Translations under genes and position numbers: made by a program | From: Bugula neritina | Lineage: Eukaryota > Animalia > Bryozoa | Length of the DNA: 64,000 nt | Direction: 5' to 3' | Assembly: GCA_964035545.1 (NCBI GenBank) | Contig: OZ037773.1 | Coordinates: forward strand, 10,011,751-10,075,750 | In this document: positions 1,944-60,119 of the stretch, one piece after another | Position numbering within the stretch: position 1 is the first letter of the stretch | Layout: each line of letters starts with the position of its first letter | The notes under the pieces: model-generated | What the model was told of the DNA's origin: nothing | Seen by the model: only the letters and a program-made list of their open reading frames with translations | The model's database searches: none

Positions 1944-4900
1944 CTAATAATTGTAGCAGAAAAATACTGACCTCTTATTAGCCTGAGAACCCTCCTCGGG
2001 AATCTTGGGGGAGGTGAGTTGAGTGCCGAGGTTTCTTCTGGCAATGTAGTCGAGGACCTCGTGAGTAGCAGCAGCACCCGACTTGCTTGTGGCCGCCCCA
2101 CCCGTCTTGGACATCTGATTGCACGCAAGACCTGAGGCTACGTTCTCACCGGAATGATTTCTCTTTCTGTGAAAACAGAAGGAGACGAGACTTTGAAACA
2201 TGATCTTCTGCTTAGCCTCAGTTACAAACATATTGAGGTGTTCTATTCAACAACTCACACCACATTTTCTAATTTCTATATCTCTCTTTCCCTTGGGTTA
2301 AATAAAACAAGCAGACAGTCCAAACACCGAAAACAGCAATCAAAACTGAAGAAGGTTATAAATACCCACAGAGCCGGTACAGACCAATCAAAATGCTGAC
2401 AATTTATAGCCTAAGTACCTTTTGCTAAGCGGCTGGGCGGGTGGAGACATGGTGCCGACTAAAGAGCCGTTGAATCTGGCTGGAACTGTTGGGAGATGGC
2501 CTGTAGCCTGGGCACCTGTGTAACTCATGTGGGGCTGTTGTAGGGGGGCGTCGGACACCCCCTGCACATGCTGATGGGTCTGCAGCTCACGACTAGGCGT
2601 GTGCACTGGCCGGAAGTTACCTATAAGAGAACCAGATGTGGTATATCAGAGATAATACAGAAAACATATGCTTTGTGAAAGCCACCAGCAAACTACTTGC
2701 TGTTTCCAAATTAAAATATGGTGGTGGTTCGAATGATTTCAGTTACTGGAGACTTACTCTGCTTTTGCAGTTCTGATTGGGAAACTCATATACTCAATGA
2801 TGGTGCGCGTTCTTTGACTATAGTCTTACTACTCACTGAGTAGAGCAAGCTTTTCTGATAAATAAATTTGCTGCAAAAGTGGAGTTGCCTTTTCTAGATT
2901 GCCAGGAGAGGGAAGACAAATCCCAAATCCACTTTTGCATTGTGGGACTACTATAAAAGGTGTGCTGGGGAGAGCCTTACAGCTAGAAATGCTGGGGGGG
3001 GTTGACTTACCGTTAGGGGTGCTGGGGGGAGAGTTGAGATCAATAGAGGACACGGTGGACATGGGGAGGATAGTGGCAGGAGAGGACACATGGGAGAACT
3101 TGCCAGAGGGTGTTCGTCCCTGAGGAGGCCCAGAGTGGTGTCTAAAACACAAGGTAACAACAGATTATCGTGTGAAACGTGTCCGGGTAGCCAATCAGAG
3201 AAATATCAACTCAATAGTGGAGTTTCCTGGTGAGAAAATTTACAGGCGATCATGTTTATGTGACTCTTGAACAAGTGTAATGTGTTAAAAACATGTTTCT
3301 TTCCCAGACTAAGAGGGTATCTGTGCTCTGATTGGTCGGAATAACTTGCTGGCAGTGTACTAGGGGGATAATGTGCTAGCAGTGTAATACTCCTTAATAC
3401 AGGAGCTCACAACAGCTAGACTGAGTACTTAAGAGCTAGACTGAGTACCTAACAGCTGGACTGAGTACCTAACAGCTAGACTGAGTACCTCACAGCTAGA
3501 CTGAGTACCTAACAGCTGAAGCCACCAACCTGAATCTTTGATTTATCCCGGAAGACAGGCTGCGGTTAGGGCCGGACTTGAGTAGCTCGTAGATGACACT
3601 TCCCGAATTGGAGGAGACATTTGATTGGCTGTGAGGGAAATGTTGAGCAGGAAGCGAAAGCGTGGTCTGTGCCTAGCCAATCAGAAGAAGATAGATAGAT
3701 CAGTTGACTCAAGCTTCATATAACTGAGTGTTTCCAATACTGCACAGGGTTTTGGTTTTAGTTCTGATAACATGTGGTCACAAAGCAATATAAACGATTC
3801 ATGTTAAAACAATTACACAGTACCCGGTACCTGTTTATATAGAGAACACAACTCTTAAATAAACAATGTAATTTGCCAATTAGGCTAGGGCTGGGCATAC
3901 TTACAGAGAGAGGGCGGGCATACTTACAGAAAGAGGGCGGGACTTCTCCACAGTTGTCATGCTGCTAGTGCTCACGTTGCCGTTCTCAGCAGAGGTGTTT
4001 CCCTGGTCAATAATATTGAAGAGTTCACTGATCTCTTCGAGATCCTCGCTATCATTGTGAGCAGAGAGCTCATTGTTACTAGCGTACGGCTGACCAATAG
4101 AGTCCGTGTAGCTGCCGTGTTGCATTGCACCGGCATCCTTGATGGGCATGAACGCGCTGTTGTCGTTGTGACCAAACTCCACCCTCTGGAACTCCGACTC
4201 CTCCTGGGGGAAACTCTGCTGCAGGTGAGCCGGGTAATGGGTGTTGAAAGGTCGCGGCGAGTAGTAGGAACCGTCCTGATAATCTACAAGGGAGGACAAC
4301 TCTAACTCATTCCACAAAGTCTGAGAAGTGCAGGAGGTAATTTAATTTTCTAGAAGCTGGTTATTCTATGCTTCGTTGAAGATATTTTATTCACTTTGTA
4401 TGGATTAAAATTAGCGGGGAGTGAAACAGGGAGTAAATAAAAGGAACAAATATTTTAAACAAAGCTAAAGTCAGAGAAACTTATACAGAAAATTGTTATA
4501 TCTACCTACTCTGTATAACCAATCAGGTTATCTCTACCTACTCTGTATAACCAATCAGGTTATCTCTACCTACTCTGTATAACCAATCACGTTATCTCTA
4601 CCTACTCTGTATAACCAATCAGATTATCTCTACTTACTCTGTATAACCAATCACCAGATGGAACAGAGAGCAGACTGACCTGGAATGACAGGGGTGTTAC
4701 GGGCAGTGTTGGGGTGACTGAGACACTGGGTAGGGGTACTCGCAGGGGTGTTGCTGCTCATCATCTGCTGAGGAAACTCGAACCCCCTCGTATAGTCGAT
4801 GAGCGGAGTGTTGGGACAGCTCTGGATGATTCGAGGGTCGTATGGCTGGTATCTCATCTGCCCATTCATTGGCTGAGCCACCTGATTTGAGCCATTGTAT

Positions 4901-7900
4901 TGGCTGGTCACAGACGTGCTCCTTTCTATTGGGTTACTCTGAAATAACACAACTACTTAAAGTGTTTTTCATTATTGGTGGTTAGGATACATGAAACAGC
5001 AATGGCTACCCTTCAACAAGTGCGTGGAATCTCCACTAAAAGTGCCACAGTTTACAGAAACACCACTTCACAGTTGAACCTGACAAGTTGTTTAAGGAAA
5101 ATAAAAATTCAAGGAATCCTGTAGTTGACAGATTAGCTGTGCCAACAATTTCCTTTCCGTACAGAAATAGACAAGAGAAGACAACTCTACATATAAATCA
5201 TGTTCTAGATCACTCCAGCATTACATTCACACACTTAAGACGTAACATCCTACGTAAGGGATAATTATGTAGCCCGAGTGTGTTACCTGGGAGCTGATGG
5301 CAGTGAGTCTGCTCACTAGACCGCCCCGGCTGTCGGTCAGCAAGCTGCCGTCAAAACTATTGCGGTGGTTGCTGATTGGGTAGAGGGGTTTCTGCACCAC
5401 GATGCCTTCGTTAAAGACTGGGGAGGTGCAGGCCGAGCTGTTCACAGAGACTGCTACAAGATACAGTAGAGGTGTTGCTACAAGACACAGTAGAGGTGTT
5501 GCTACAAGACACAGTAGAGGTGTTGCTACAAGACACAGTAGAGGTGTTGCTACAAGACACAGTAGAGGTGTTGCTATAAGACACAGTAGAGGTGTTGCTA
5601 CAAGATACAGTGAACTAGTAGAAGTGAAGGGGGTGGATCACCGTGGAAAGGGGTGGATGACAAGTCAGGCAGAGGGGAGGATAAAGGCAGTTTGTAGGAC
5701 AGAATTAATGAAGGTGAGGGAAAAACAGGAATTCATAGGTTATTGACAAGAAACTGCATTATATTTAGAAGAGACTTGGTAAAGGAATGAGCTGCAAGAC
5801 CAAGTGCTTAGTCATGATGGGTTTTGCACTGCCAACATCAACATGTTTTGTTATGTTTACAATCTCAGGATGGTAAACAATGACTATATCTCTACTGTCC
5901 CTCACATACAGGCCATTCGCTGACCAACATTTACTGCTATGTACAAGAATAACTATCCAAAGGTCAATAACACCGGCTTGTTTACCACACTTAGAAACCA
6001 AAATATAAAATGTATTTTCAAACAGTGTTTGTGAAAGCCATTAGTAGAGCAGTGAGACAAGGCCTAGTTCTTAGGAAATACCTAGTGTTTGTGTGGGTGT
6101 GAAAACTAACTAAACATTTTTGATAAACATTTAGTTGTAAACAGCAATAGATGTTGGAAACTAGAACTTTTCAACATATCCAAATAGTCAGATACTACTT
6201 TAGAGAAGTGGAAACTTTCTCTTCTAGTGTCACTAATAATCTTATTATTCTTTTCTGAAACTAAATAGTAAACAAAAATTTATTTCAGGACAACTATTTT
6301 TCAGAACTGGGAATTTTATTAAAAAGTTTGTATATACAAATCTCAGGGATGGTGACTATAAACTTGCGTGAGTTTTTTATATATACAGAACTGTTAGATT
6401 CGGTTTTTATAGATAGGAAAAATGTGGTCTGCTAATTTTTTTTTTTCTGAGAATAGTAAATGATTACCATTAAAAATCCTGGCAAGATCCAAGAAGATAA
6501 TTACTGTTTAGATATAAAAAACAACATTGTTGCCCAGTCTGCAAAACAACCTGCTTTTAATGCCAAAATAGACAGTCATTGCCCTTCAGCCTATGCCAAT
6601 GCTGACAGACAGTTAGTTGCCTGTCAACTGTGAACAAGTGTCCCATGTGCAGGATCCTGCAGGTGTGATGTCACCAGATATAAATGACATCACTCAATTT
6701 ACCACCAACCACAGCTATTCACTACCATCAGCTTTTGCATAGATATTTGTGGCGTGGAAGCAGAAATATGTGTCCTAATGCAGGACATGGCAGATTTTAA
6801 ATCGGTTATAGTATTTGGTATTTTTAGTAACTTATAATGTTCACAGAATCAATGATATTTTCAAGTGTATTGTATGGATTTTGTTAAAGTAATAACTAAT
6901 CACCACTTTATAAGACCTCAAGATATGCCAAACTATAGAAAACTGCCCAGTTAGAGGTGTTCTTATTTCAAATGTTTTAAAAGAAATGTGAAATATTTCA
7001 GGTCACCTGTATTGTTATAGCATGTTTACAGAAGAGCACACAGAAAAGCAAACAACGCCCATGTGTTCCCATACATAGTGGGAGCTACACAATGCATGCA
7101 TAGGCTGGCTAAATGCTGTCAATAAGCAGTATCTGACAAACATAGCTGGCTTGTGGACTTTAAATCAGCTTTTTTTGTGTGTCAATGACTTTATTAGCTG
7201 GTAGTTAGAAATGTTGGTTGCTCTGGAATAAATAATTTTTTTTCAAATAAATGATAAGCTAAAAAAAATCCATACTAAATAAAAACATAATTAACAGAGC
7301 TTGGCGATAGCTGGTAAAAACCTCTCCCCCTATAAAACACATCCTGTTGGAAGGAGACCAGCAGAGAGAGAAAGCTAGACTTCCGAGAAATCTCCTTTAG
7401 GAAATGTGTTTTTCAATGACAACACGACAGACAAAACAAGCTGCTGGCGGTAAACAGCTTACTATACACATGGGCGTAAACAATGATCACAATTTACATG
7501 AAAAATAGATGATAAATTTCGAACTTTGGATTTATTTTTTATGAAAAATAGAAAGCTGATGGCTGTGACACGCAATACTTCCACATAGAGTAGACAAACA
7601 ACCAGCAGAATGGAGGAGCCTGGATGTGATGTCTGTAATTGTTTTATGAATTTGTTTATCTGTTGAATTGTGTCACACTGGGTACTGCTATCATCTGATT
7701 ACGTAACACCACACTTAAGTTGACAATAGATGAGTAGATATGATTCATTGTATTGTGTCAACCAGTAGTAGTTCCAGTATCATAGCTAATTGTAATAATT
7801 ACCATCATCTGATATTCTCTATACTTCTAAACCGAAATGTTTCTCCCTACCTGAACAGGGAGTAAACTTTACTATCTAAAAGGTCAGAAATTTGCAATAT

Positions 7901-16103: not shown

Positions 16104-21773
<5,670 letters not shown>

Positions 21774-31000: not shown

Positions 31001-33109
31001 CTACTTAAGGAAGCACGAGGAGTTGCCTTTCCAGAAAATGAAGAAACCACAACCAGTGGACATGCATAGAGCCTGGCAATGTATCTCAGTATAGGCTGTA
31101 AGAGGGTCAGCAAAGATTAGCATCTCAAGAGCAGCGTCAGCAGCTTTTCCTTTCAGCTGTTGGCCAGTAGAAGAACCATCTGAGTTCTCTGTCAGCTGAA
31201 AAAGTTTAGAGGTTCCTAGAGCTCCTAAAATATATCCATAGATATATTTTCACCTGTAGCTTAATGGCAGGCTACAACATGACAGCCAAACTAGCTTTTT
31301 GATTGATTGACTGAATAAAAAATGCAAAAATATTAAAATTGTGTGGGAATAATTTACCAAATAACAGAGTTTCTCCTGTCATATAGCCAGATGCTGCTAC
31401 AGATGACTTGCTAGTTGTGAATGAGGAATTGAGTTTTTCATCATCAAATATTGAATAAGATTTTGCCATTGGAGTTGCACCTTCACCAGGCAGTGGCAAT
31501 GCTTCAGCGAAACTGCTTGATTGGTTTTTAATTTCGAACGGACTTTCAGTTGAAGCAGTCATCTTTTCACCAAGTTGGACAGATTTCTTTGTGGAAGTGG
31601 CCAAAGGGTGTGTAAGAGATGAAGATGGTTTCGCTGAGTTGGAGCTTGAAACAGGAGGTGTAGAGATAGCTTTAGTCAAACTGGTGGTACTCTCAGATGT
31701 TCTTGTCTTTGCCATCTTGTCAAGAGGCGATGGAGATGTTCCTTCTTCTGGTAACTTTTCAAGAAAAGGTGCAGACGTTGCAAAGGTCCCTATTGTTGAT
31801 GAACTGCTACCAGGTGGTGGGAGTGTTGTTGCCAAAGCAGTCATCTGATTTTCAGACAAAGACAAACCGGTTAATGCTCTACCTACTGTGGTTTTGGAAG
31901 GTGACATTGGTGATTGTAAGATTGTTGAAGCGACGGTGGCGATGGGGCCATTATTCTGATAAGAATATTCTAGATTGCAGACAGCCTCTTTTTTATGAAC
32001 GCATAAGTTCAGGTTCTCATCAAATCTGTGCGAAGGTGGATAGCAGACTCGCTGGATTGCAACACCTTTAGAGCAAGTGTAGTATGACTGGCAAGAGAAT
32101 TCATCTGGGTAATCTCCATCTTGTCTTCCATTGCAGTGAAAGTCAGAGCCATCTACTAACATATTTTTTATTCAATTTATATTCAAAAGGAAATTCATTA
32201 ATGAGCAACATTTACACCTTATACAGTCAATGTTGCTTTAATAAAAATATTATTCTCAAGATAGATTTGATAACCAGACATACATAAGGGATTTTAGCTT
32301 CTATGACTCACCAGTAACTGTTTCCGATAAGACAGGAAGCAAAGTTTGAGGAGTGTCTGGGTACGAGTAGTCGAGAGTACACTTGGCATCTTGCTTGTGA
32401 ACACAAATTAGTTGCTCTTCATCAAATAATCGAGAAGGAGGAAAGCAATCATCATGGGTTGTGATGTCACCATCTCTGCAGGTGTAATATGCAGCACAGG
32501 AGAACTCGTCAGGATAATCTCCATCTGGTCTTCCTGCACAGCTGAATTCTGCAGTGGCTGCAAAATGGTGAGACAACATGGATATTGGTGAGCATGGGTA
32601 AGTCAAACAGCCGGCAATGAGAACTAAGTTTGCATGTTGAGGTGTTATTGTGCATGCATGCATGCATGTTTACCACTTAGAATTACTATAATAATAAAAA
32701 GTATAGTATAAATATTATTTATGTCAGCAGTTATAGTGCTTATTTGATCGAAAGTACTTCAAACAAATTTTACATTAGCAAAAAATAGTAGGTAACTATA
32801 TATCAAATAAATTTCATTACTTAGAATTTAAATCCTCATCTTTTAGAATAAATTTCTCACCATGATAATTTTTTTGCTTTTTGTAAAACATTTATGCAAA
32901 GTAATAAAAGATACCAAAGCATTATTTCTTAAAATTGAGATAAAAACCCATACTAAGAACATAGGATTGTACTAAATGATATTGTCAATTAAATTAGTAA
33001 AATCTTACTTAGCATTTATAATTCAGAAGAATAAGATCTTACCTTTAACTGTAACGGCCAAAGTCATTGACAATGCTACGAAATGTAGTAACATATGCAT
33101 GTTGATCAT
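31001..33109 (-). CDS. Secreted protein: signal peptide, 2 chitin-binding type-2 (peritrophin-A/CBM14) domains, S/T/P mucin stalk, C-terminal PAN/apple-like domain
   Basis: Exons 33109-33043 (MINMHMLLHFVALSMTLAVTVK), about 32558-32311 (CAGRPDGDYPDEFSCAAYYTCRDG..C..LFDEEQLIC...C), about 32152-31358 (CNGRQDGDYPDEFSCQSYYTCSKG..C..FDENLNLC...C plus stalk) and 31224-31001 (..EIHCQALCMSTGCGFFIFWKGNSSCFLK*). All introns phase 1. Confidence 0.85.
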
Positions 33110-34213: not shown

Positions 34214-35788
34214 TCAAATTATTTTGTAAAACAAGATGTGATTGGCTGAAGAGGTCATAGCAGCTGATTTAGAGATCATTCCCAATCTTAAAACTGACCG
34301 CATAACACCAATTATTAGAAAAGATGTAGAAAAAGTCACAGCCATGAGTCATGCATAATGCCTGACAGTGAACAACAGAGTAGACTACAGCCTTGGTGTC
34401 AATGCGGTAATCCTTGTAGATGTCTTTTTTGACAATCAACTTGCTGATTGAAGCATTGTTTTGAGTTCCCTCAATTTCAAAGAACTTGAGGCTTTCTGTG
34501 AAATAAAAAAAAGATTATCATAAATCAGCAATATTGTCAGTATTGGAACAAAAATTATATCTTTGTATTAAGTTTCACTATTGTTTTGTTATAAAATTTT
34601 AGCTTATAAGAAAGTTATGCCAAAAGCTATTGATTGAAATGCTTTGTTGATCTTAGCAACACACCTTAGCAACATATTCTAGCAACACACCTTAGCAACA
34701 TATTATTCTAGTAACACACCTTAGTAATATGACCTAGCAACACTCCTTAGCAACACACCTTAGCAACATGCTATAGAAACATACTTTAGCAACATACCCT
34801 ATAGCAACATGCTCTAGCAACATGACCTAGCAAACAATCTAGCAACACTCCTTAGCAACATGCTATAGCAACACCCCTTAGCAACATATCCTAGCAACAC
34901 ACCTTGGCAACACACCTTAGCAGCATACCTTAGCAACATACCCTAGCAGCATACCCTATTAAATAACCTAGCAACATGCTATAGCAACACATTTTAGCAA
35001 CACACCCTAGCAACATGCCTTATATAGCAACATACCCTAGCAACATATTTCAGTGACATATAGTGCTACATAATCGGGCTGATAGTATTAAAGCCTTAAA
35101 ACTGCAATCTTAGTATAAGCAATAATAAAGCATGAAACAATGACAGTTTAACAGCAACTTTTGAGAGTTTAAAGTATTCTGAACAGCTCAATTTTCTCTG
35201 GAGGTCGTGACGGTAATTCTCGAGACTATAACCTAAATACCACTATAGTTCTTTTTGTAAATTGAAATGACAACTTCCTAGAATTACCAGAGGATTGAAG
35301 TGTCACAAGTTTGTTGTGCAGTTCTTTCTTTGTTAAGCCAGGTGGTTCGTTTTTAGATCTGGGATGCTTTTCTCCTTTAGCTAGAAGTACAAGATTAGTA
35401 TTTATAACATTTGAAAACCAATAATACAATACTGGAAGGATCTGAAACTGTAAACTAATTTATTATATGTAATACATATATATGTGTGTGCTTGTGCCTG
35501 TGCCTGTGTGTGTGTGTGTGTGTGTTTGCGTGTGTTTTATATGAGTGTGTGTGTGAGAGTGTGTGATGTGTTTGTGTGAGTGGGTGTGTGTTTGTTTTCA
35601 AAGCTTCTGCTTGCACTTATAACAAAGCATTACTTTAATAAAATGCCCTTCTAACAATACTAACAGCACATCAGCAGCAAACAAATGAAATCAACAGAGA
35701 AGATTAATCAAATATTACCTGCAATCAGGAGAGCAATGCTTCCAAACACTAAAAATGCTAGCAGCAGGTGACTAGTCTTCATGGCCAT
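34214..35788 (-). CDS. Small secreted protein with a PAN/apple-like Cys domain, paralogous to the C-terminus of the neighbouring chitin-binding gene
   Basis: Exon 35788-35719 MAMKTSHLLLAFLVFGSIALLIA; exon about 35380-35288 AKGEKHPRSKNEPPGLTKKELHNKLVTLQSS; exon 34495-34214 ESLKFFEIEG...VYSVVHCQALCMTHGCDFFYIFSNNCVMRS...LFYKII*. An extra internal exon near 35232-35150 is possible. Confidence 0.7.
34652..35046. repeat. Degenerate 13-bp minisatellite with TAGCAAC core, about 30 units
   Basis: cttagcaacacac-type units. Confidence 0.9.
35483..35592. repeat. Imperfect (GT)n microsatellite
   Basis: Direct reading. Confidence 0.85.
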
Positions 35789-36574: not shown

Positions 36575-37452
36575 CTAATCATCCTTGATGTCAATGTATC
36601 TTCTGTCATCTCCATCATCATCTCTGCACCAACAGAGGTCGTCATCGTCATCACAATCTCCGCTGTCGAATCTGTCATTGTCATCATCGAGGCAGTAGGA
36701 GTTACATCCTCGTGGGTTTCGAGGGCAATAATCATCATCAGCATGAGCAGACAACACCAAACCTAAATAAATAGTTATGGTAGTTGTAAGTGAGAGTAGG
36801 TAATATGATAGTTGCTACAAGTTATAGGTAGTATAGCTGGCAATATACTGCATGATATATGTCCTTTAGACTGTAGTTATGCTAAACTTATAAAAGTATA
36901 TTCATATAGGCACAATCAGCAGGCAGTGCCTATACTGGATAAATAAAATTATGAGTGGAAAATAGCAGTCATAACAGTCAACATGCCCATCACATTGAAT
37001 ACATGATAAAACAACTTTTTTAGAAATATCGCACCTTTGAATTATGCATTTCTTATAGATTTTTAGGTTTACTATCCAAGTTTTCAATTAAGTACAAAAG
37101 TGTAAGTCAAACTTGCAAATTCATAAATGTTTTACATATAACATAACTTATATAAGTCTTACATCATCAGCAGAGTAATATTTGTGACAGAAAAGGATGG
37201 AGTTTAATTTGAAAATATTTTGTTAATTCAGTTTGTATCTACAGTTTATCATGGTAGAAAGGTTTATAGTTTTTCTGACATGCTAGATAAATTGCAGCTT
37301 ATTGCAGCATTTATGTAAAATTTATAATATAACGGCAAATATTTTTCATCCCTTTATGTCAACTGGACTAATATCAAGAAGAAGTAGATAGATTTTTGAA
37401 GCTACTTACACAATAGGACAGCTACAAGCAGAGCAATAATTGATAGCCTCAT
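36575..37452 (-). CDS. Secreted Asp-rich (anionic) CS-alpha/beta defensin-fold peptide
   Basis: Exon 37452-37410 MRLSIIALLVAVLL, phase-1 splice to 36762-36575 CLVLSAHA-DDDYCPRNPRGCNSYCLDDDNDRFDSGDCDDDDDLCWCRDDDGDDRRYIDIKDD*. Cys spacing C-x6-CxxxC-x12-C-x6-CxC with GxC. 5' UTR exon (donor about 37694) and TATA at 37744-37753. Confidence 0.8.
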
Positions 37453-41759: not shown

Positions 41760-42595
41760 ATGAAGTGTTTAGTTGGTGCTTTGATGTTGATATGCTTGCT
41801 TGGTGAGTAATAGTGTTAGCATTATGTTAATATACCATTTGGTCATAAACAGCATTTTATTGTTGCTTTAGTGTAGTTTTAATCATGAAACTTATAGCTG
41901 GTTTAATATTAAGTATATAGTAATAAAATCTCATTTATAAATATTATGTAACAACCACAATGAGCTAGAATTGAGGTACAGCAATAGTATATGTGTGCCA
42001 CTAGCATATTTTTAAATGTCTTGCAGTACTATAACAGCGTCATTTATATATGTGACCCCAATATTAATAACCTGCAAAAGTTTTCTCAGAGTGAATTGTT
42101 AGTACACGGATAGGATTTGTGGCTATGCCATTATGGTTAGGGTGACAGGTAGTCTTACCCTACCTCTGCTACAACATTCTTCTATATCCTGAGGCTATGT
42201 GCCACATTATAAGAGAATACTGTGCATCTATAGCAATCAGTTTGTAAAGTTAGCAGATGTCTTTCACCTGGTAAAGTTACAACAACCCGAACATAATATA
42301 AACTCTGAATGGCTTCATATTTTCAACCATTACTTGTCAATTTGTAGTTATCCTCCAGACAGTGAGGGGAGACAATCGCTGTATTCAAGTTAGTAAGCGT
42401 GTGTGCAAGTACACCTGTAAGTCATATGGCTATGAGAATGGTAAATGTGACTCTGCAGGAGTGTGCTTCTGCACGCAGGGAGACAACAGACGAGCCAAGA
42501 GGTTCGACATGCTGCCTAATGCTGACAGCGTTATAAATGCTGCCCGGAATGGAGTCGGGGCTCTCAGAGATTCCAGCAAAGAAGTTGGTAAATAA
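41760..42595 (+). CDS. Secreted CS-alpha/beta defensin-like precursor with C-terminal propeptide
   Basis: Exon 41760-41802 MKCLVGALMLICLL, phase-1 splice to 42348-42595 VILQTVRG-DNRCIQVSKRVCKYTCKSYGYENGKCDSAGVCFCTQGDN-RRAKR-FDMLPNADSVINAARNGVGALRDSSKEVGK*. TATAAAA at about 40940, UTR exon donor at 40992, AATAAA at 42845. Confidence 0.82.
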
Positions 42596-44509: not shown

Positions 44510-46335
44510 AACTTTTGCAGAGTATAAGAAACTTTATTTAGTAATCAATGTGAAACAGAATTATAACCAATAGTTGTGTAACACCAACAATATTTGATAA
44601 ATACTAGGTAGCTAAAAACAAATTTACTTAAACAGGTCACCAATGCCAAAGAATACAGCAGTGTAGTGAAAATTGCTTCGTGGAAAAGACTGCAGCCGTT
44701 TACAAAATTAATTTGCAACGTTCTACAGCAAAATATTGAATGGGTCGTTGTTTCCAAGAGATATTTCACTCAACATGCAGTGAGTGAATACTTCTGTATC
44801 AGGTCTGTATGTGATCTAGTAGTGTCGGGTTTGGTAACCTCTGGTGGTTTGGTGGTATGGAGCTTGATAACCTTTAGTGGTTTGGTGGTATCTGGTAGTT
44901 TGGTAGTGTGGGGTTTGGTAACCTTTGGTGGTTTGGTGGTATGGAGTTTGGTAACCTTTGGTGGTTTGGTGGTATCTGGTAGTTTGGTAGTGTGGAGTAG
45001 TTTGGTAGTGTGGGGTTTGGTAACCTTTGGTGGTTTGGTGGTATGGAGTTTGGTAACCTTTGGTGGTTTGGTGGTATCTGGTAGTTTGGTAGTGTGGAGT
45101 AGTTTGGTAGTGTGGGGTTTGGTAACCTTTGGTGGTTTGGTGGTATGGAGTTTGGTAACCTTTGGTGGTTTGGTGGTATCTAGTGGTTTGGTGGTATGGA
45201 GTTTGGTAACCTTTGGTGGTTGGGTGGTATGAATTTGTTGCATAGCGATCTAAAACATAAAACAAACTATTATTACTTCAACTTAAATTACTTACTGCAT
45301 GTTATATTTTGGAAAACTTGCTTTACTGATTACTGCTCTATAAAATCTTTCCCTCAATTCAGTAAATTTCTACATTTCTGTTAGATTAAATTACTTTCTC
45401 CCCAAATCTTCTATGCACTTCATAGAATATAAAAACCTACAGAGATGGTAGCAAATGCTAACAAAAACGTTTCTTATATAAATTATCAGAAAATGTTTAT
45501 TCATAACTATGATTAATACATTATAGAAAGAAGCAGCAAGACTTACTATGGGGGCGCTGACGCCTAGAATAAGAGGTTGAGTAACTTCCGTAGCTAACTG
45601 CACCTGTAATATAAAAGTTAGCTTATAGTTTAATGTCTTGTTATGATATGGTACAGTAAATTCAAATATATGTTCACAGAGAGAAATCAACAGCTTGAAA
45701 CTTTTCTTAGACAAACTTAGAGCTTACCGAGAGCCAATACCAGGCCGAGGATCAACAAGATTTTAGAGTCTGTAAAACAATAACATAATATAACATGCAA
45801 GTATAAAATTATTATAATGTGTGGTTCAAAAGTAATTAAAAGTTCAGATGCATGAAAGATATTATAAGAACAACTAGTAGAAAGATGAGCAATTATAACA
45901 ATATAATTTCCATAAAATATACCATGCTCCATATAGTAATGCTTTTTCTTTTTAATCTTATTTCAAGTAACTAAATAATAAGAATATATTAACTGTTATG
46001 GGTGAGAAAAAAATAAAAAATAATATTTTAGGTACTTAAAAAAAGTTTGTTTTAAGCAGCTTAATAAAAAACTATATTTTTAATCAATTATCTGGTCTTG
46101 GTAAAAAATTATTAAAAGTTGTGCTCACCCATGATAGAAGTTTAGTTGTTCACCAGCTACCAGTTGAAGATACTGCAAGCAGAATGAATATTTTAGAAAT
46201 CGACTCTGCTTATATACTCCTGGAGAAGGTTTTAATCACATGAGGCAATAGAAAGAAAGTTCCCCTTGACTCAGGAAAATATTTCACACTTCACTGACAA
46301 TTTATGATTTATCATTAATTTATCCAATTACCAGA
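44510..46335 (-). repeat. Left arm of inverted gene duplication (partner 51775-54020)
   Basis: Promoter, introns, exons and 3' UTR align in reverse complement, e.g. 46128-46200 versus 51885-51956 nearly identical. Confidence 0.9.
44816..46132 (-). CDS. Secreted Tyr/His/Thr/Gln-rich hexapeptide-repeat protein, copy A
   Basis: Exons 46132-46129 (ATG G), about 45769-45728 (DSKILLILGLVLAL), 45603-45547 (GAVSYGSYSTSYSRRQRPH) and 45249-44816 (NRYATNSYHPTTKGYQTPYHQTTRYHQTT...GYQTRHY*). Splice phase selects the YHQTT frame. TATA at about 46210-46216; poly(A) signal at about 44533-44538. Confidence 0.82.
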
Positions 46336-51774: not shown

Positions 51775-54020
51775 TGGTAATTGGATAAATTAATGCTAAA
51801 TCATAAATTGTTAGTCAGCATGAAACAGTTTCGGTTGCCTCATGTGATTATAATCTTCTCCAGGAGTATATAAGCAGAGTTGGTTTCTAAAATATTCATT
51901 CTGCTTGCAGTATCTTCAACTGGTAGCTGGTGAACAACTAAACTTCTATCATGGGTGAGCATAAGTTTTAAATGAATTTTTACAAAGACCAGCTATTTGA
52001 TTAAGCTTTTTTTTACTGCTTAAAAACCTTTTTGCAAGTAATATAATATTATATTCTATTTGTTTTATTTTTGTTACAATCAGTTAATATCAATATTATT
52101 TAGTTATACCCAGGTTAACATATAACTTTAAAAAGATAAAGTATTACTATGGAACATGGTTTATTGTAGGCAAATGATATTGTTATATATAATTATTGCT
52201 CATCCGTTCTAGTTGTTTTTGGTATTCCTTCATGCTTTTTAATTTTTAATTACTTTTAAACTCGACATTATATTAGTTTTTTACTTGTATGTTATATTAT
52301 GTTACTGTTTTACAGACTCCATAGAAGAATTTTATACTTGCATATTATATAATATTATTGTTTTACAGACTCTAAAATCTTGTTGATCCTCGGCCTGGTA
52401 TTGGCTCTCGGTAAGTTCTTAGTTTGTCTAGAAAAAGTTTCAAGCTGTTGATTTCCCTCTGTGAACAGATAATTGAATTTACTGTACCATATTATAACAA
52501 GACATTGAACTATAAGCTAACTTTGGTATTACAGGTGCAGTTAGCTACGGAAGTTACACATCCTCTTATTCTAAGCGTCAGCGCCCCCATAGTAAGTTAT
52601 GCTGCTTCTTTCCATAATGTAATAATCGTAGTTGTGAATACACATTTTCTGATGATATATATAAGAAAAAGTTTTGCTAGTATTCGACTATCACCTCTGC
52701 AGGTTTTTATATATTTTGTGAAGTGCGTAGAAAATTTGGAGAGAAGCTAGTTTAATCTAACAGAAATGTAGTACTTTACCAAATTGAGAGGGAAATTTTA
52801 TAGAGCAGTAATCCGTCAAAATAAGTTCTAGAGAGTAGTATAGAATAAATCATTTATGTTCAAATAAAAATAGTTTGTTTCATGTTTTAGGTCACTACGT
52901 CCCAACTACCAGATACCACCAAACGACTAAAGGCTACCAAACCCCACACTACCAAACCACCCCACACTACCAAACTACCAGATACCACCAAACCACCAAG
53001 GGTTACCAAACCCCATACCACCAAACCACCAAGGGTTACCAAACTACCCCACACTACCAAACCACCCCACACTACCAAACCACCAGATACCACCAAACCA
53101 CCAAGGGTTACCAAACTACCCCATACCACCAAACCACCAAGGGTTACCAAACTACCCCATACCACCAAACCACCAAGGGTTACCAAACTACCCCACACTA
53201 CCAAACCACCAGATACCACCAAACCACCAAGGGTTACCAAACTACCCCATACCACCAAACCACCAAGGGTTACCAAACTACCCCACACTACCAAACCACC
53301 AGATACCACCAAACCACCAAGGGTTACCAAACTACCCCATACCACCAAACCACCAAGGGTTACCAAACTACCCCATACCATCAGACCACCAAGGGTTACC
53401 AAACTACCCCACACTACCAAACCACCAGATACCACCAAACTACCAAGGGTTACCAAACTACCCCATACCACCAAACCACCAAGGGTTACCAAACTACCCC
53501 ATACCACCAAACCACCAAGGGTTACCAAACTACCCCACACTACCAAACCACCAAGGGTTACCAAACTACCCCACACTACCAAACCACCAGATACCACCAA
53601 ACCACCAAAGGTTACCAAACCCCATACCACCAAACAACCAAAGGTTACCAAGCCCCACACTACTAAATCACATACAAATCCAATACATAGTTATTCACTC
53701 CCTTCCTAGTAAACTATCTCTTTGACACAACGACTCATTCAACGTTTTGCTACAAAATCTAGCAATAAGTTTAATGAAAGACAGTATTTCTTGAGCTTTT
53801 AGTTGACAATTGCATGTAGTGCATGTACTTTTATAGACATGAAACTTTTTTCACCAAAATGATGTAGTCTGTGACATTTGTCACATATTTGAATGAAATT
53901 GTGTTCAGTCATGTGTGCAATTTTTTATCAAATATAGTTGATGTTACATATATCTTTGCTTTTATTCTGTTTTTATTTTAATTACTAAATAAAGTTTATA
54001 ATATTCGGTAAAACATTTTA
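51775..54020 (+). repeat. Right arm of inverted gene duplication (partner 44510-46335)
   Basis: Reverse-complement homology to 44510-46335, including intron sequence. Confidence 0.9.
51951..53666 (+). CDS. Secreted Tyr/His/Thr/Gln-rich hexapeptide-repeat protein, copy B
   Basis: Exons 51951-51954 (ATG G), 52369-52410 (DSKILLILGLVLAL), 52535-52591 (GAVSYGSYTSSYSKRQRPH) and 52891-53666 (SHYVPTTRYHQTTKGYQT...GYQAPHY*). TATATAA at about 51867; AATAAA at about 53988. Confidence 0.85.
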
Positions 54021-56567: not shown

Positions 56568-56797
<230 letters not shown>

Positions 56798-57140: not shown

Positions 57141-59504
57141 ATGGGTAAGTTTATAGAACAAAATTTCATCAGCATATTCTGCCTTAAATAATTTTAGAGT
57201 TGCATTAAAATTGAATATTTTCCCACATGGCCTGTAAACATACTTTCTCATTATTATTTAGGAGTATCATGTAATTTTCTCAAAAAGTCATTGTGAGTAA
57301 CTTTTTAGCTCACTGACCTTTTTGGTTTACCAGTTATTGCAGTTGCAGCTTAAATATCATTACTGCAGATTCTAAGTTTCTATACATAGTATAATAGCAA
57401 TACTGTTTAATGCAAATTGTAGATAACAAGATGCTGATACTGATTGGCCTTGTGGCTGTTTTCGGTAAGTATAGAAAACATGCTACAACTTCATTTAATA
57501 CATTTATTGTATATATATGTCATATACATAATTGCCAATGCTTTTGATAAAATTGTTTTAAAAGCAGGTATTGAGAGATATAGGTAATAAAAGTGACAGC
57601 ATAAACCCCAAGACACTTTTGAATAAATAAAGCTAATCTTTGTTTTATAGTAAAAATTATTTTTTTTAAAATAGTAAAGTTGATGCATAATAATTGATTT
57701 TTACTAATTTTTTAGTTATTGCATGTATATAGCAATATTTGCATATAATGCATTGGTTTTCTTATTATGTAGTTTTTGCTAGTTTCAATATAAAATCAAC
57801 CCTTCAAACAACAATATATTGTTTAGCCTGTGAAACATTAATTTATATAATAATTGAGACACTTCATATATTGTAATATTTTGTTGTATTGTAAACAGCA
57901 TGCGTCAGTGGATACAGTAGCTATCCCAAACATTCCTACGGTCACCATGGTTACCAACCATCATCTCACAAACCAAACACTTACTGTAAGTTAACAAGGA
58001 ATTAACCGATTATTAAAAATGTTTATTTTTTATTTTTCAATATTATCTAATTTGTTTCATCAGGCTTTTGTCTCTATAATTAATTTATAAATTCTGAGAA
58101 ATTTTTATTGGATATATTATTTTAATACAATTTTGTTTAAGAATTTTTTGTAGCTAACGCAGGTGCTGCAGTACCACAAACCCTAATTTATAATATTTTG
58201 AGTTTTCATGATATTTAAACAAATTTTTCACTGTAGAGTTTATATGATAACACCTAAATATATGCATATATGATAAACAGAGAATTACTTATAGTTAAAA
58301 CATTACCATGGCTAAAGCAAATTAATATATTATATCAATAATCAATATAGCAGTGAGATCTATATATTATAGCAATACGTATAAGTTGAAATTTCCTGAT
58401 GTTTAACCACTTCATCACACTATACCACTGCATACAGTATACAACTGTATATAATGTAGACACAAGGGTTTGGTCACAGTGGGAACAATGGTCGCACTGC
58501 CCTGTTAAATGTGGAGGGGGAGAACAAAGGAGATACAGAATATGCACCACCAAGACTCACTATGGCTACGGTCACTCCAACAACAAAGAGTGTTACGGCC
58601 CTTCCTATGCCAGAAGAAGATGCAACACGAAATGTTGTCCAGGTTTGTGGTTCAGACAACTCCAATATTGTACGAGTCGTAAAATCAGAATGCAACATAC
58701 CAGTGACAATATATTGCATGCAGCAGCATTAATTTATAGGTAGCGATTTGGGTAACATGATTTCAGTGCTTCACTTTTGAGCAGAAACAAAAGATTTTGC
58801 ATGATCAGTTGTTTCATTTTCACTTGAAATTGCATTTGCATTTGTAATACTTGCATGAGGAACTCTACCAGTTACTCTACCAGTTACTCTACCAGTTACT
58901 CTACCAGTTACTCTACCAGTTACTCTACCAATCACTATATAATTATCAAGTGTTCTACTAATTACTGTATTGAGTACTGCATAATCAGTACAACAAAACT
59001 GTTTTGTAGTTGATGGACGCTGGGGTCAATGGACTGGCTGGTCTCAGACTTACAGTGGATCTTACAAACAGACCAGATCCAGATACTGCAACTACCCAGC
59101 ACCTCGCTGCGGAGGCAGAGGTTGCTATGGGGACAGCAAACAAGTTAAAGCTGTTCATCGTAAGTTGCTTCAACTGCAAGGTTTAACAAACATGCAAAGG
59201 CATGTTATTTAAATCATAGTTTTAAAACTGCAAAGCTTTTACAGGATATCATAATAGTTTTATTAGGATATAGTTGTTTAAGGAAGCAAATCTATTGATG
59301 ATTTTTATTGTTGATGTTTTAGTTCCCCACCCTCACTACCAACCTAAAGCACATCACGGACCGTCTCACTACCAACCTAAAGCACACCATGGACCGTCTC
59401 ACTACCAACCCAACATTCACCATGGACCGTCTCACTACCAACCCAACATTCACCATGGAGCGTCTCACTACCAACATAAAACACACCACAAACCAAACTA
59501 CTAG
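57141..59504 (+). CDS. Secreted protein with two thrombospondin type-1 repeats flanked by His/Tyr-rich segments
   Basis: Exons 57141-57144 (ATG G), 57423-57464 (DNKMLILIGLVAVF), 57899-57985 (ACVSGYSSYPKHSYGHHGYQPSSHKPNTY), 58460-58642 (WSQWEQWSHCPVKCGGGEQRRYRIC...CYGPSYARRRCNTKCCP), 59010-59159 (VDGRWGQWTGWSQTYSGSYKQTRSRYCNYPAPRCGGRGCYGDS) and 59323-59504 (HYQPKAHHGPS-type 11-mers x4, KPNY*). TATAAAA at about 57068. Confidence 0.85.
58862..58930. repeat. 12-bp minisatellite (actctaccagtt)
   Basis: Intron between the two TSP1 exons. Confidence 0.9.

Positions 59505-59983: not shown

Positions 59984-60119
<136 letters not shown>

Follow-up and report, generated by a model that had tools for sequence, protein, structure and literature searches.

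A candidate secreted Tyr/His-repeat material protein at a chromosome 9 locus of the bryozoan Bugula neritina

Gene A and its transcripts

We analysed a window of 64,000 nucleotides (nt) on chromosome 9 (C9) of the bryozoan Bugula neritina (assembly GCA_964035545.1, contig OZ037773.1, positions 10,011,751 to 10,075,750 of the forward strand), which contains a gene, here called gene A, for a putatively secreted protein built from short Tyr-containing repeats. Gene A occupies 51951-53666 (+), an interval that runs exactly from ATG to TAA and holds four coding exons separated by canonical GT-AG introns. The surrounding DNA has a G+C content of 34% and is eukaryotic in character, the AT-rich introns being bounded throughout by GT and AG. 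The product of 292 amino acids (aa) comprises a signal peptide, a short Tyr/Ser cap with the sequence K-R-Q-R, and the repeat array. The parts of gene A and its nearest relative, paralogue B, are listed here.

51867-51874 (+): TATA box of gene A, motif TATATAAGCAGAG; the same motif stands in paralogue B at 46216 (-)
51909-51954 (+): 5' untranslated region (5'UTR) and exon 1, of which 51951-51954 is coding (ATGG, Met plus the first base of codon 2); spanned by a contig of sequencing run X1
52369-52410 (+): exon 2, 42 nt, encodes the hydrophobic signal-peptide core; identity to paralogue B's exon 2 is 100%
52535-52591 (+): exon 3, 57 nt, end of the signal peptide, Tyr/Ser-rich cap (YGSYTSSYS) and K-R-Q-R-P-H; 95% identical to paralogue B
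52891-53666 (+): exon 4, the entire repeat domain and the TAA stop codon (53664-53666)
52911-53663 (+): repeat array, 42 hexa- and pentapeptide units (KGYQT(T), PYHQTT, PHYQTT and RYHQTT), the last being PHY, with a 126-nt, 7-unit higher-order repeat
53667-54010 (+): 3'UTR, with AATAAA at 53988-53993 in a context, TTACTAAATAAAGTTT, that is kept in paralogue B; the end near 54010 is estimated from this signal
44816-46132 (-): paralogue B, 178 aa; exons 46132-46129, 45769-45728, 45603-45547 and 45249-44816; 23 units, mostly KGYQT, ending in RHY and TAG

The leader of gene A has the form of a typical N-terminal signal sequence, with a charged M-D-S-K start followed by a 14-residue Leu/Ile/Val/Gly/Ala core encoded by exon 2. 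The initial annotation had placed a KR site after the signal peptide; a basic site is indeed present, and its actual sequence is K-R-Q-R-P-H, matched by R-R-Q-R-P-H in paralogue B, and it is a putative cleavage site.

Words of exon 4 and the 3'UTR occur in 16 public sequencing runs, most of them small RNA-like sets from one organism and several studies; X1 and X2, both RNA-like, contain 23% of the words sampled. We placed the Logan contigs of four runs on positions 51850-52990 at a likeness of at least 95%. Run X16 covers all bins at about 28x and more, and this even cover marks it as genomic DNA. In run X1, cover is confined to the 5'UTR and exon 1 (51889-51966), with a depth of 2,000-5,800, to exon 2, with 69,000, and to the start of exon 4, with 171,000 to 1.2 million, summed there over many repeat contigs; intron bins have a depth of 0, or of 3 to 24 near the intron ends. 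At exon 4, RNA-like cover sets in with the bin 52864-52902, where the exon starts, and reaches very high values from 52903 onward. In runs X4 and X8, cover is limited to the beginning of exon 4, with a depth of about 750-1,600. The splice between exons 1 and 2 is seen in X1 as a loose end, in which ...CTATCATG is joined to exon 2 at 52368/52369. Exon-only cover at such depth reflects abundant spliced RNA, contig depth being only a rough guide to expression level. Thus, gene A is real, spliced and very highly transcribed, which answers the question of expression raised by the initial annotation.

A second loose end in X1, at 52411-52412, leads from an identical exon 2 into another, related exon 3, GCAGTCAGCTACGGAAGTTACGGAACCCGT, which encodes AVSYGSYGTR. 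This variant was not found in the assembly with up to 3 mismatches, and its source may be an allele that has diverged, a member of the B. neritina species complex, or a third paralogue that the assembly lacks. Separately, 63 nt of intron 3 (52794-52856) are matched by half of a 129-nt X1 contig with a depth of about 30, the other half of which lies elsewhere; this contig could come from pre-mRNA, from a repeat element or from a minor alternative exon.

Paralogue B and the local gene family

Genes A and B lie head to head on opposite strands, 5.8 kb apart. Their exons are 95-100% identical, as compared with 64-91% for the introns, 71% for the 300 nt upstream and 55% for the 3' flank; conservation extends to the proximal promoter with its TATA motif, and an AATAAA signal follows paralogue B at 44538-44533 (-). 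DNA and pattern searches of the whole genome for further copies yielded only A and B. Weak matches at C2:33.57 Mb were rejected as relatives, being part of a chromosome-end satellite with a PNPKPQT-type reading. This satellite, about 3 kb at the extreme end of chromosome 2 (C2:33573594-33574109), is open in several frames (PNPKPQT / GLGFGVW) and resembled exon 4 solely through its CCAAACC-type composition.

Two further genes share the leader of A and B, one within the window and one on the neighbouring stretch of chromosome 9 (L014).

57141-59504 (+): gene C, 215 aa; leader layout as in A and B, two TSP1 modules (Pfam TSP_1, E = 9e-8) and a His/Tyr tail ending in NY
L014 2855-742, about C9:10096492-10098605 (-): gene D, 103 aa; same leader layout, a single TSP1 module, ends in HYY; ~21 kb beyond the window

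A second gene-D-like copy has its first exon at L014 8827 (-), and an array of ~100-aa TSP1 mini-proteins stands just outside the window.

The leader cassette common to all four genes consists of an exon 1 with the coding sequence ATGG, an exon 2 of 42 nt and an exon 3 whose length is a multiple of 3, separated by phase-1 introns. Its signal peptide has the form MD-x-K/R-L-L-I-x-L-G-L, and each of the four proteins ends in Tyr. Because of these shared leader exons and the C-terminal Tyr, we class A and B as TSP1-less members of a local chromosome 9 family of small secreted, Tyr/His-rich, Tyr-terminated proteins. Neither A nor B contains any Cys or Trp, and hence neither has the TSP1 module that Pfam recognises in gene C; in A and B, the expanded Tyr/His repeat stands in place of the globular module. 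The tail of gene C is itself repetitive (an 11-mer, HYQPKAHHGPS, with a 33-nt period and about 4.8 copies), and its (P/S)HYQ core is common to the PHYQTT unit of gene A. This resemblance suggests, as a lead and not a demonstration, that the A/B array grew out of a gene-C-like tail. Gene A also illustrates cleanly how reuse of a phase-1 leader cassette can give rise to a new low-complexity protein within a family.

The repeat array, its reading frame and resemblances elsewhere

The units of gene A comprise 13 KGYQTT, 9 PYHQTT, 9 PHYQTT and 7 RYHQTT (one of the last within the irregular first block), together with 3 KGYQT, 1 KGYQA and the C-terminal PHY. Among 41 units parsed on the DNA, 37 measure 18 nt and 4 measure 15 nt. 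Every unit has exactly one Tyr, 60% of units have a His, and the mature chain lacks Asp, Glu, Cys, Trp, Phe and Met. This census confirms what had initially been described, namely a signal peptide followed by a repeat written in KGY, PYH, PHY and RYH words, with one Tyr per unit and neither acidic residues nor Cys. The accompanying description of KGY units alternating with His-containing units holds approximately and not strictly: the order runs RkbbRkaKbbRKaKaKbR..., with one to three His-containing units between KGY units, and the RYH unit belongs to both classes, being cationic and His-bearing at once. Tandem Repeats Finder resolves a higher-order repeat of 126 nt, or 7 units, in 4.9 copies with 89% matches and a score of 908, far beyond chance.

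In composition the mature chain is 31% Thr, 17% Tyr, 16% Gln, 11% His, 8% Pro, 9% Lys plus Arg and 6.5% Gly, with less than 1% Ala; the whole 292-aa product holds 28 His, 47 Tyr, 19 Lys and 9 Arg. The His residues are single and bordered by Tyr, Pro or Gln, and T-T-P contexts are frequent. The computed mass of the mature chain is about 31-33 kDa, its isoelectric point (pI) 9.8 and its grand average of hydropathy -1.86. Because of the 28 His, the computed net charge rises from +23 to +26 at pH 8.1 to +45 to +48 at pH 5.5. The AlphaFold2 model has no secondary structure and a predicted local distance difference test score (pLDDT) of 34.6, and the protein is accordingly predicted by that model to be fully disordered. 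Taken together, these features mark a secreted chain that is polycationic and intrinsically disordered, its aromatic "stickers" set at even spacing beside Lys/Arg.

We considered whether the hexapeptide frame might be the wrong one, with transcripts using instead a TTKPP-type Pro/Thr mucin frame, or the array being a non-coding minisatellite within a UTR. In both genes the TTKPP-type frame of exon 4 is in fact open as well, an antisense open reading frame (ORF) of 257 aa exists, and RNA contigs do not directly show how exons 3 and 4 of gene A are joined. The frame assignment is based on splice sites of canonical form, on the conservation of these sites in B, C and D, and on a codon-position test in which units were parsed on the DNA and each was compared with its class consensus across both genes A and B. 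When the 35 unit variants are read in the Tyr/His/Gln/Thr frame, 33 lie at codon position 3 (binomial P about 5e-14) and 32 leave the amino acid unchanged; fixed differences between A and B are also of the synonymous type, such as AAG/AAA for Lys and ACC/ACT for Thr. Read in the TTKPP frame, the same changes become replacements, Arg/Lys and Leu/Pro. The third forward frame has stops, the donor and acceptor are canonical with splice phases identical in all four genes, and the stop codon is kept at the homologous position as TAA in A and TAG in B. The codon-position pattern shows purifying selection on the repeat in the Tyr/His/Gln/Thr frame and brings the wrong-frame or non-coding reading, which we judge extremely improbable, close to exclusion. 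The secreted-type repeat thus stands in the frame in which it was initially annotated and not in the TTKPP frame.

Protein searches used the translation of exon 4, except that the Pfam query was the leader plus the first repeats; Pfam assigned that query to no family. A word-indexed search of 5.8 billion proteins returned 4541 candidates for exon 4, none at E <= 1e-3, from a collection that may leave out this genome's own proteins, and a feature search of the ESM Atlas gave a top score of 0.86 to unrelated clusters. An exhaustive phmmer search of 1.84 billion representative proteins produced 94 matches, among which we inspected the best one and a sample of the rest. Those inspected are Thr/Gln/Tyr-rich stretches, in a frog fragment, a sponge leucine-rich repeat protein, a DYKQT repeat of Dreissena (zebra mussel) and others, and we rejected them as homologues because they are low-complexity look-alikes with different architectures. 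The leader, the four-word code and the acid-free cationic composition are each absent from all those inspected.

The best match, XP_074657066.1 from Tubulanus polymorphus (48% identity over about 190 residues, E = 1.7e-51), is an uncharacterised multidomain LDLa/trypsin membrane serine protease of this nemertean, 1704 aa long. Like gene A, its mucin-like stalk carries a heptapeptide core, TTPYHQ(S/T)T, in tandem. Unlike gene A, the stalk unit is a 13-mer, TPYHQSTEPQTT, with Glu and without Lys/Arg units, and neither the leader nor the architecture is shared. We read the resemblance as low-complexity convergence, not homology. A full-text literature search for six hexapeptide strings gave no paper. 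The initial annotation recognised the repeat from no named family, and this is borne out by the Pfam, word-indexed, ESM Atlas, phmmer and literature searches, which found no true homologue. The collections searched probably contain few or no other bryozoan proteomes, so that "lineage-specific", as the repeat had been called, means without relatives outside bryozoans. The design principle is known, and the sequence family is new.

Possible roles of the gene A protein

We suggest that the gene A protein is a secreted, cross-linkable structural material of the chitinous cuticle or of attachment, a reading that we hold at about even probability. A secretory epithelium would export it either to form attachment material or, as a matrix precursor, to build the chitinous cuticle of cystid wall and rhizoids. 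Regularly spaced Tyr beside Lys/Arg would provide cation-pi cohesion; comparable compositions favour cation-pi driven condensation in mussel, tubeworm and squid materials. On passing from the pH of the secretory granule to that of seawater, deprotonation of His would bring the computed net charge down by half, from about +45 to about +23, favouring condensation on release. The T-T-P sites are good candidates for mucin-type O-glycosylation, and the same motif occurs in the nemertean mucin-stalk setting; they are likely to carry glycans that would make the chain an extended, hydrated rod. Oxidation would then fix the material by coupling Tyr and by joining His or Lys to quinones; in insect sclerotisation, His and Lys add to laccase-made quinones.

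The oxidative enzymes encoded in the genome bear on the last step. A six-frame genome search gave 87 exon matches to animal heme peroxidases in at least six clusters, with tandem expansions at C9:8.06-8.14 Mb, C3:1.19-1.24 Mb and C7:9.24-9.28 Mb and also on C2, C1 and C4. Laccase-like multicopper oxidases, likewise expanded in tandem, gave 25 matches, or about ten genes (C3:22.32-22.39 Mb and C5:7.13-7.17 Mb), and tyrosinase (PF00264) gave a single exon match of 40 bits at C7:2091060-2091200; one such enzyme could suffice to modify Tyr. Because of this enzyme set, coupling by heme peroxidases (dityrosine) or laccase-like oxidases (quinones) would be favoured over a tyrosinase/3,4-dihydroxyphenylalanine (DOPA) route; if the Tyr residues are cross-linked, the mussel-style route is less likely and not the obvious one. 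A further multicopper oxidase match, in an uninterrupted 619-aa frame on a small unplaced contig (C13:33974-35557), may be bacterial, from a symbiont or a contaminant.

Comparison with known systems, for which the known side is drawn from general knowledge, helps to define the design. Mussel foot protein 1 (mfp-1), whose tandem AKPSYPPTYK decapeptides form the byssal cuticle, is like the gene A protein secreted, strongly basic and disordered, with a short tandem peptide of Tyr, Lys, Pro and Thr, no acidic residues in the repeat and very high expression in a secretory epithelium (the epithelium being inferred for gene A). Features of the mfp-1 type are found throughout gene A: basic short tandem repeats (42 units; pI 9.8), Tyr beside Lys/Arg, and a secretory signal in the hydrophobic leader. 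Unlike mfp-1, gene A shows no sequence homology to it, its hexapeptide has Gln and Thr-Thr with His in 60% of units, it has one Tyr per unit and not two, it comes from the phylum Bryozoa, and its genome has one tyrosinase match as against many in molluscs. The cement proteins Pc-1 and Pc-2 of the sandcastle worm consist of basic repeats, Gly/Tyr/Lys and His-rich, that are secreted in condensed form and harden when the pH jumps on contact with seawater. They share with gene A a basic repeat polypeptide of Tyr, Lys and His and, as proposed here, setting through condensation and pH; gene A differs in its Gly content of only 6.5%, in lacking homology and in having no acidic phosphoserine partner identified. 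The Pfam, word-indexed and phmmer searches linked the protein to no named adhesive family, mfp and Pc included.

Shematrins and KRMPs of the mollusc shell and periostracum are likewise low-complexity, Tyr-rich, basic, secreted and terminated by Tyr, and belong to small clustered gene families associated with chitinous matrix, an association that is probable for gene A; they are Gly-rich, whereas gene A is Thr/Gln-rich and without sequence similarity to them. The initial annotation had also pointed to squid beak His-rich proteins, a likeness that the composition does not bear out: squid beak HBPs and Nereis Nvjp-1 are dominated by Gly, His and Ala, with His at roughly 20-30% in GHG or HH-type repeats, and gene A, with 11% His in single residues, 6.5% Gly and less than 1% Ala, is far from the proteins of squid beak or Nereis jaw. 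The broader design reading of that annotation, a secreted cross-linkable Tyr/Lys/His material, remains plausible.

Plant extensins and proline-rich cell-wall proteins (for example with PPVYK repeats) are cross-linked by peroxidases into the polysaccharide wall. They resemble gene A in design, as basic, O-glycosylatable tandem-repeat rods with regularly spaced Tyr (and His or Lys), and the analogy is attractive because the genome is peroxidase-rich and tyrosinase-poor. Gene A differs in lacking Ser-Hyp4 motifs and in being an animal gene, for which the polysaccharide would be chitin, not cellulose or pectin. By this analogy, the protein could do in an animal what extensins do in plants. As a Tyr/His hexapeptide rod, basic and with O-glycosylated Thr, it would condense at the pH jump and be coupled covalently by heme peroxidase or laccase, through dityrosine or His/Lys-quinone links and with no DOPA-tyrosinase step, into the bryozoan chitinous wall or holdfast. 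We offer this more specific proposal tentatively and think it rather unlikely in full; if true, it would make gene A the first molecularly defined structural or attachment protein of Bryozoa, derived by replacement of a TSP1 module with an expanded tail repeat.

Other genes near gene A bear on the choice among roles.

31272-32663 (-): two chitin-binding peritrophin-A (CBM_14) ORFs, E = 1e-7 and 2e-8; a long mucin-like stretch of Ser/Thr/Pro comes after one of them
42302-42592 (+): ORF for a defensin-like Cys-stabilised peptide, with a C...CxxxC...GxC...CxC pattern and then an RRAKR site
36578-36814 (-): ORF for a related, extremely Asp-rich Cys peptide in the same cluster

A TSP1 protein with a Tyr/His tail and chitin-binding mucin ORFs nearby fit a role in extracellular matrix. 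An exact-protein look-up of the neighbouring CBM_14 ORF returned no record.

Several observations weigh against a cross-linked structural material encoded by the gene as modelled. Exon 3 of gene A has no cover in X1 at a likeness of at least 95%, and no contig bridging exons 3 and 4 was found in the runs laid on 51850-52990. The oxidase counts, on which the preference for peroxidase or laccase rests, are exon-level lower bounds. Thr at 31% and Gln at 16% are atypical for known DOPA glues, and the defensin-like peptides at the locus keep an immune or surface-coat role a live alternative.

A mucin-like surface coat would have dense O-glycans on TT(P) and form a hydrated layer, protective, lubricating, antifouling or interacting with microbes or symbionts, in place of a cross-linked solid, with Tyr and His incidental or weakly adhesive. 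The array is a Thr/Pro-rich tandem repeat (Thr 31% and Pro 8%, or about 39% of the mature chain) and in this resembles the Pro/Thr/Ser domains of mucin-type glycoproteins, QTT-PYHQ-type sequence occurs in the mucin-type stalk of the nemertean protease (the TPYHQSTEPQTT repeats), and neighbouring CBM_14 ORFs have Ser/Thr-rich mucin stretches. We nevertheless consider such a coat unlikely, since each unit keeps one strictly conserved Tyr and a paired cation, there are no acidic residues, unlike in ordinary mucins, Cys-rich oligomerisation domains are absent from the protein, and its relatives C and D are Tyr/His-rich, Tyr-terminated proteins of matrix type. Glue, cuticle and mucin-like coat cannot be separated from the sequence alone. 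Improbable in our view is a histatin-like cationic protein of defence or metal binding, co-secreted with the local defensin-type peptides and binding Cu, Zn or Fe or acting on microbes. A net charge of about +23 at pH 8.1, the 28 His and 47 Tyr, and the presence in the cluster of the defensin-like ORF (42302-42592) and the Asp-rich Cys peptide (36578-36814) speak for it; yet a chain of about 31 kDa with 42 near-identical units and a single dibasic site is unlike processed antimicrobial-peptide precursors, the isolated His (at most one per unit) do not form strongly chelating HxH or HH clusters, and the extreme RNA depth in some runs better fits a bulk material. A nutritive or storage protein for brooded embryos was also considered, and we found nothing in its support.

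As a candidate cross-linkable material, gene A is of interest because Bugula neritina is a major fouling animal worldwide and the gene supplies a concrete, very abundant candidate for a material protein. Our literature search turned up no structural or adhesive protein of a bryozoan, whether from cuticle, rhizoids or larval cement, and searches on bryozoan cuticle, DOPA, RNA-seq and thrombospondin returned nothing relevant. The chemistry departs from the mussel and tubeworm paradigms in being Thr/Gln-rich and Gly-poor, with one Tyr per six residues and His in 60% of units, and in a genome rich in peroxidases and laccase-like oxidases and nearly free of tyrosinase the protein could exemplify a different route of underwater curing.

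Tandem repetition is widespread across the window. Minisatellites with periods of 13-46 nt are unusually dense (for example 21162-21443, 34652-35047, 56571-56795 and 59986-60116), and long perfect (AG)112 and (TG)65 runs are present, with 75 Tandem Repeats Finder rows in 64 kb.

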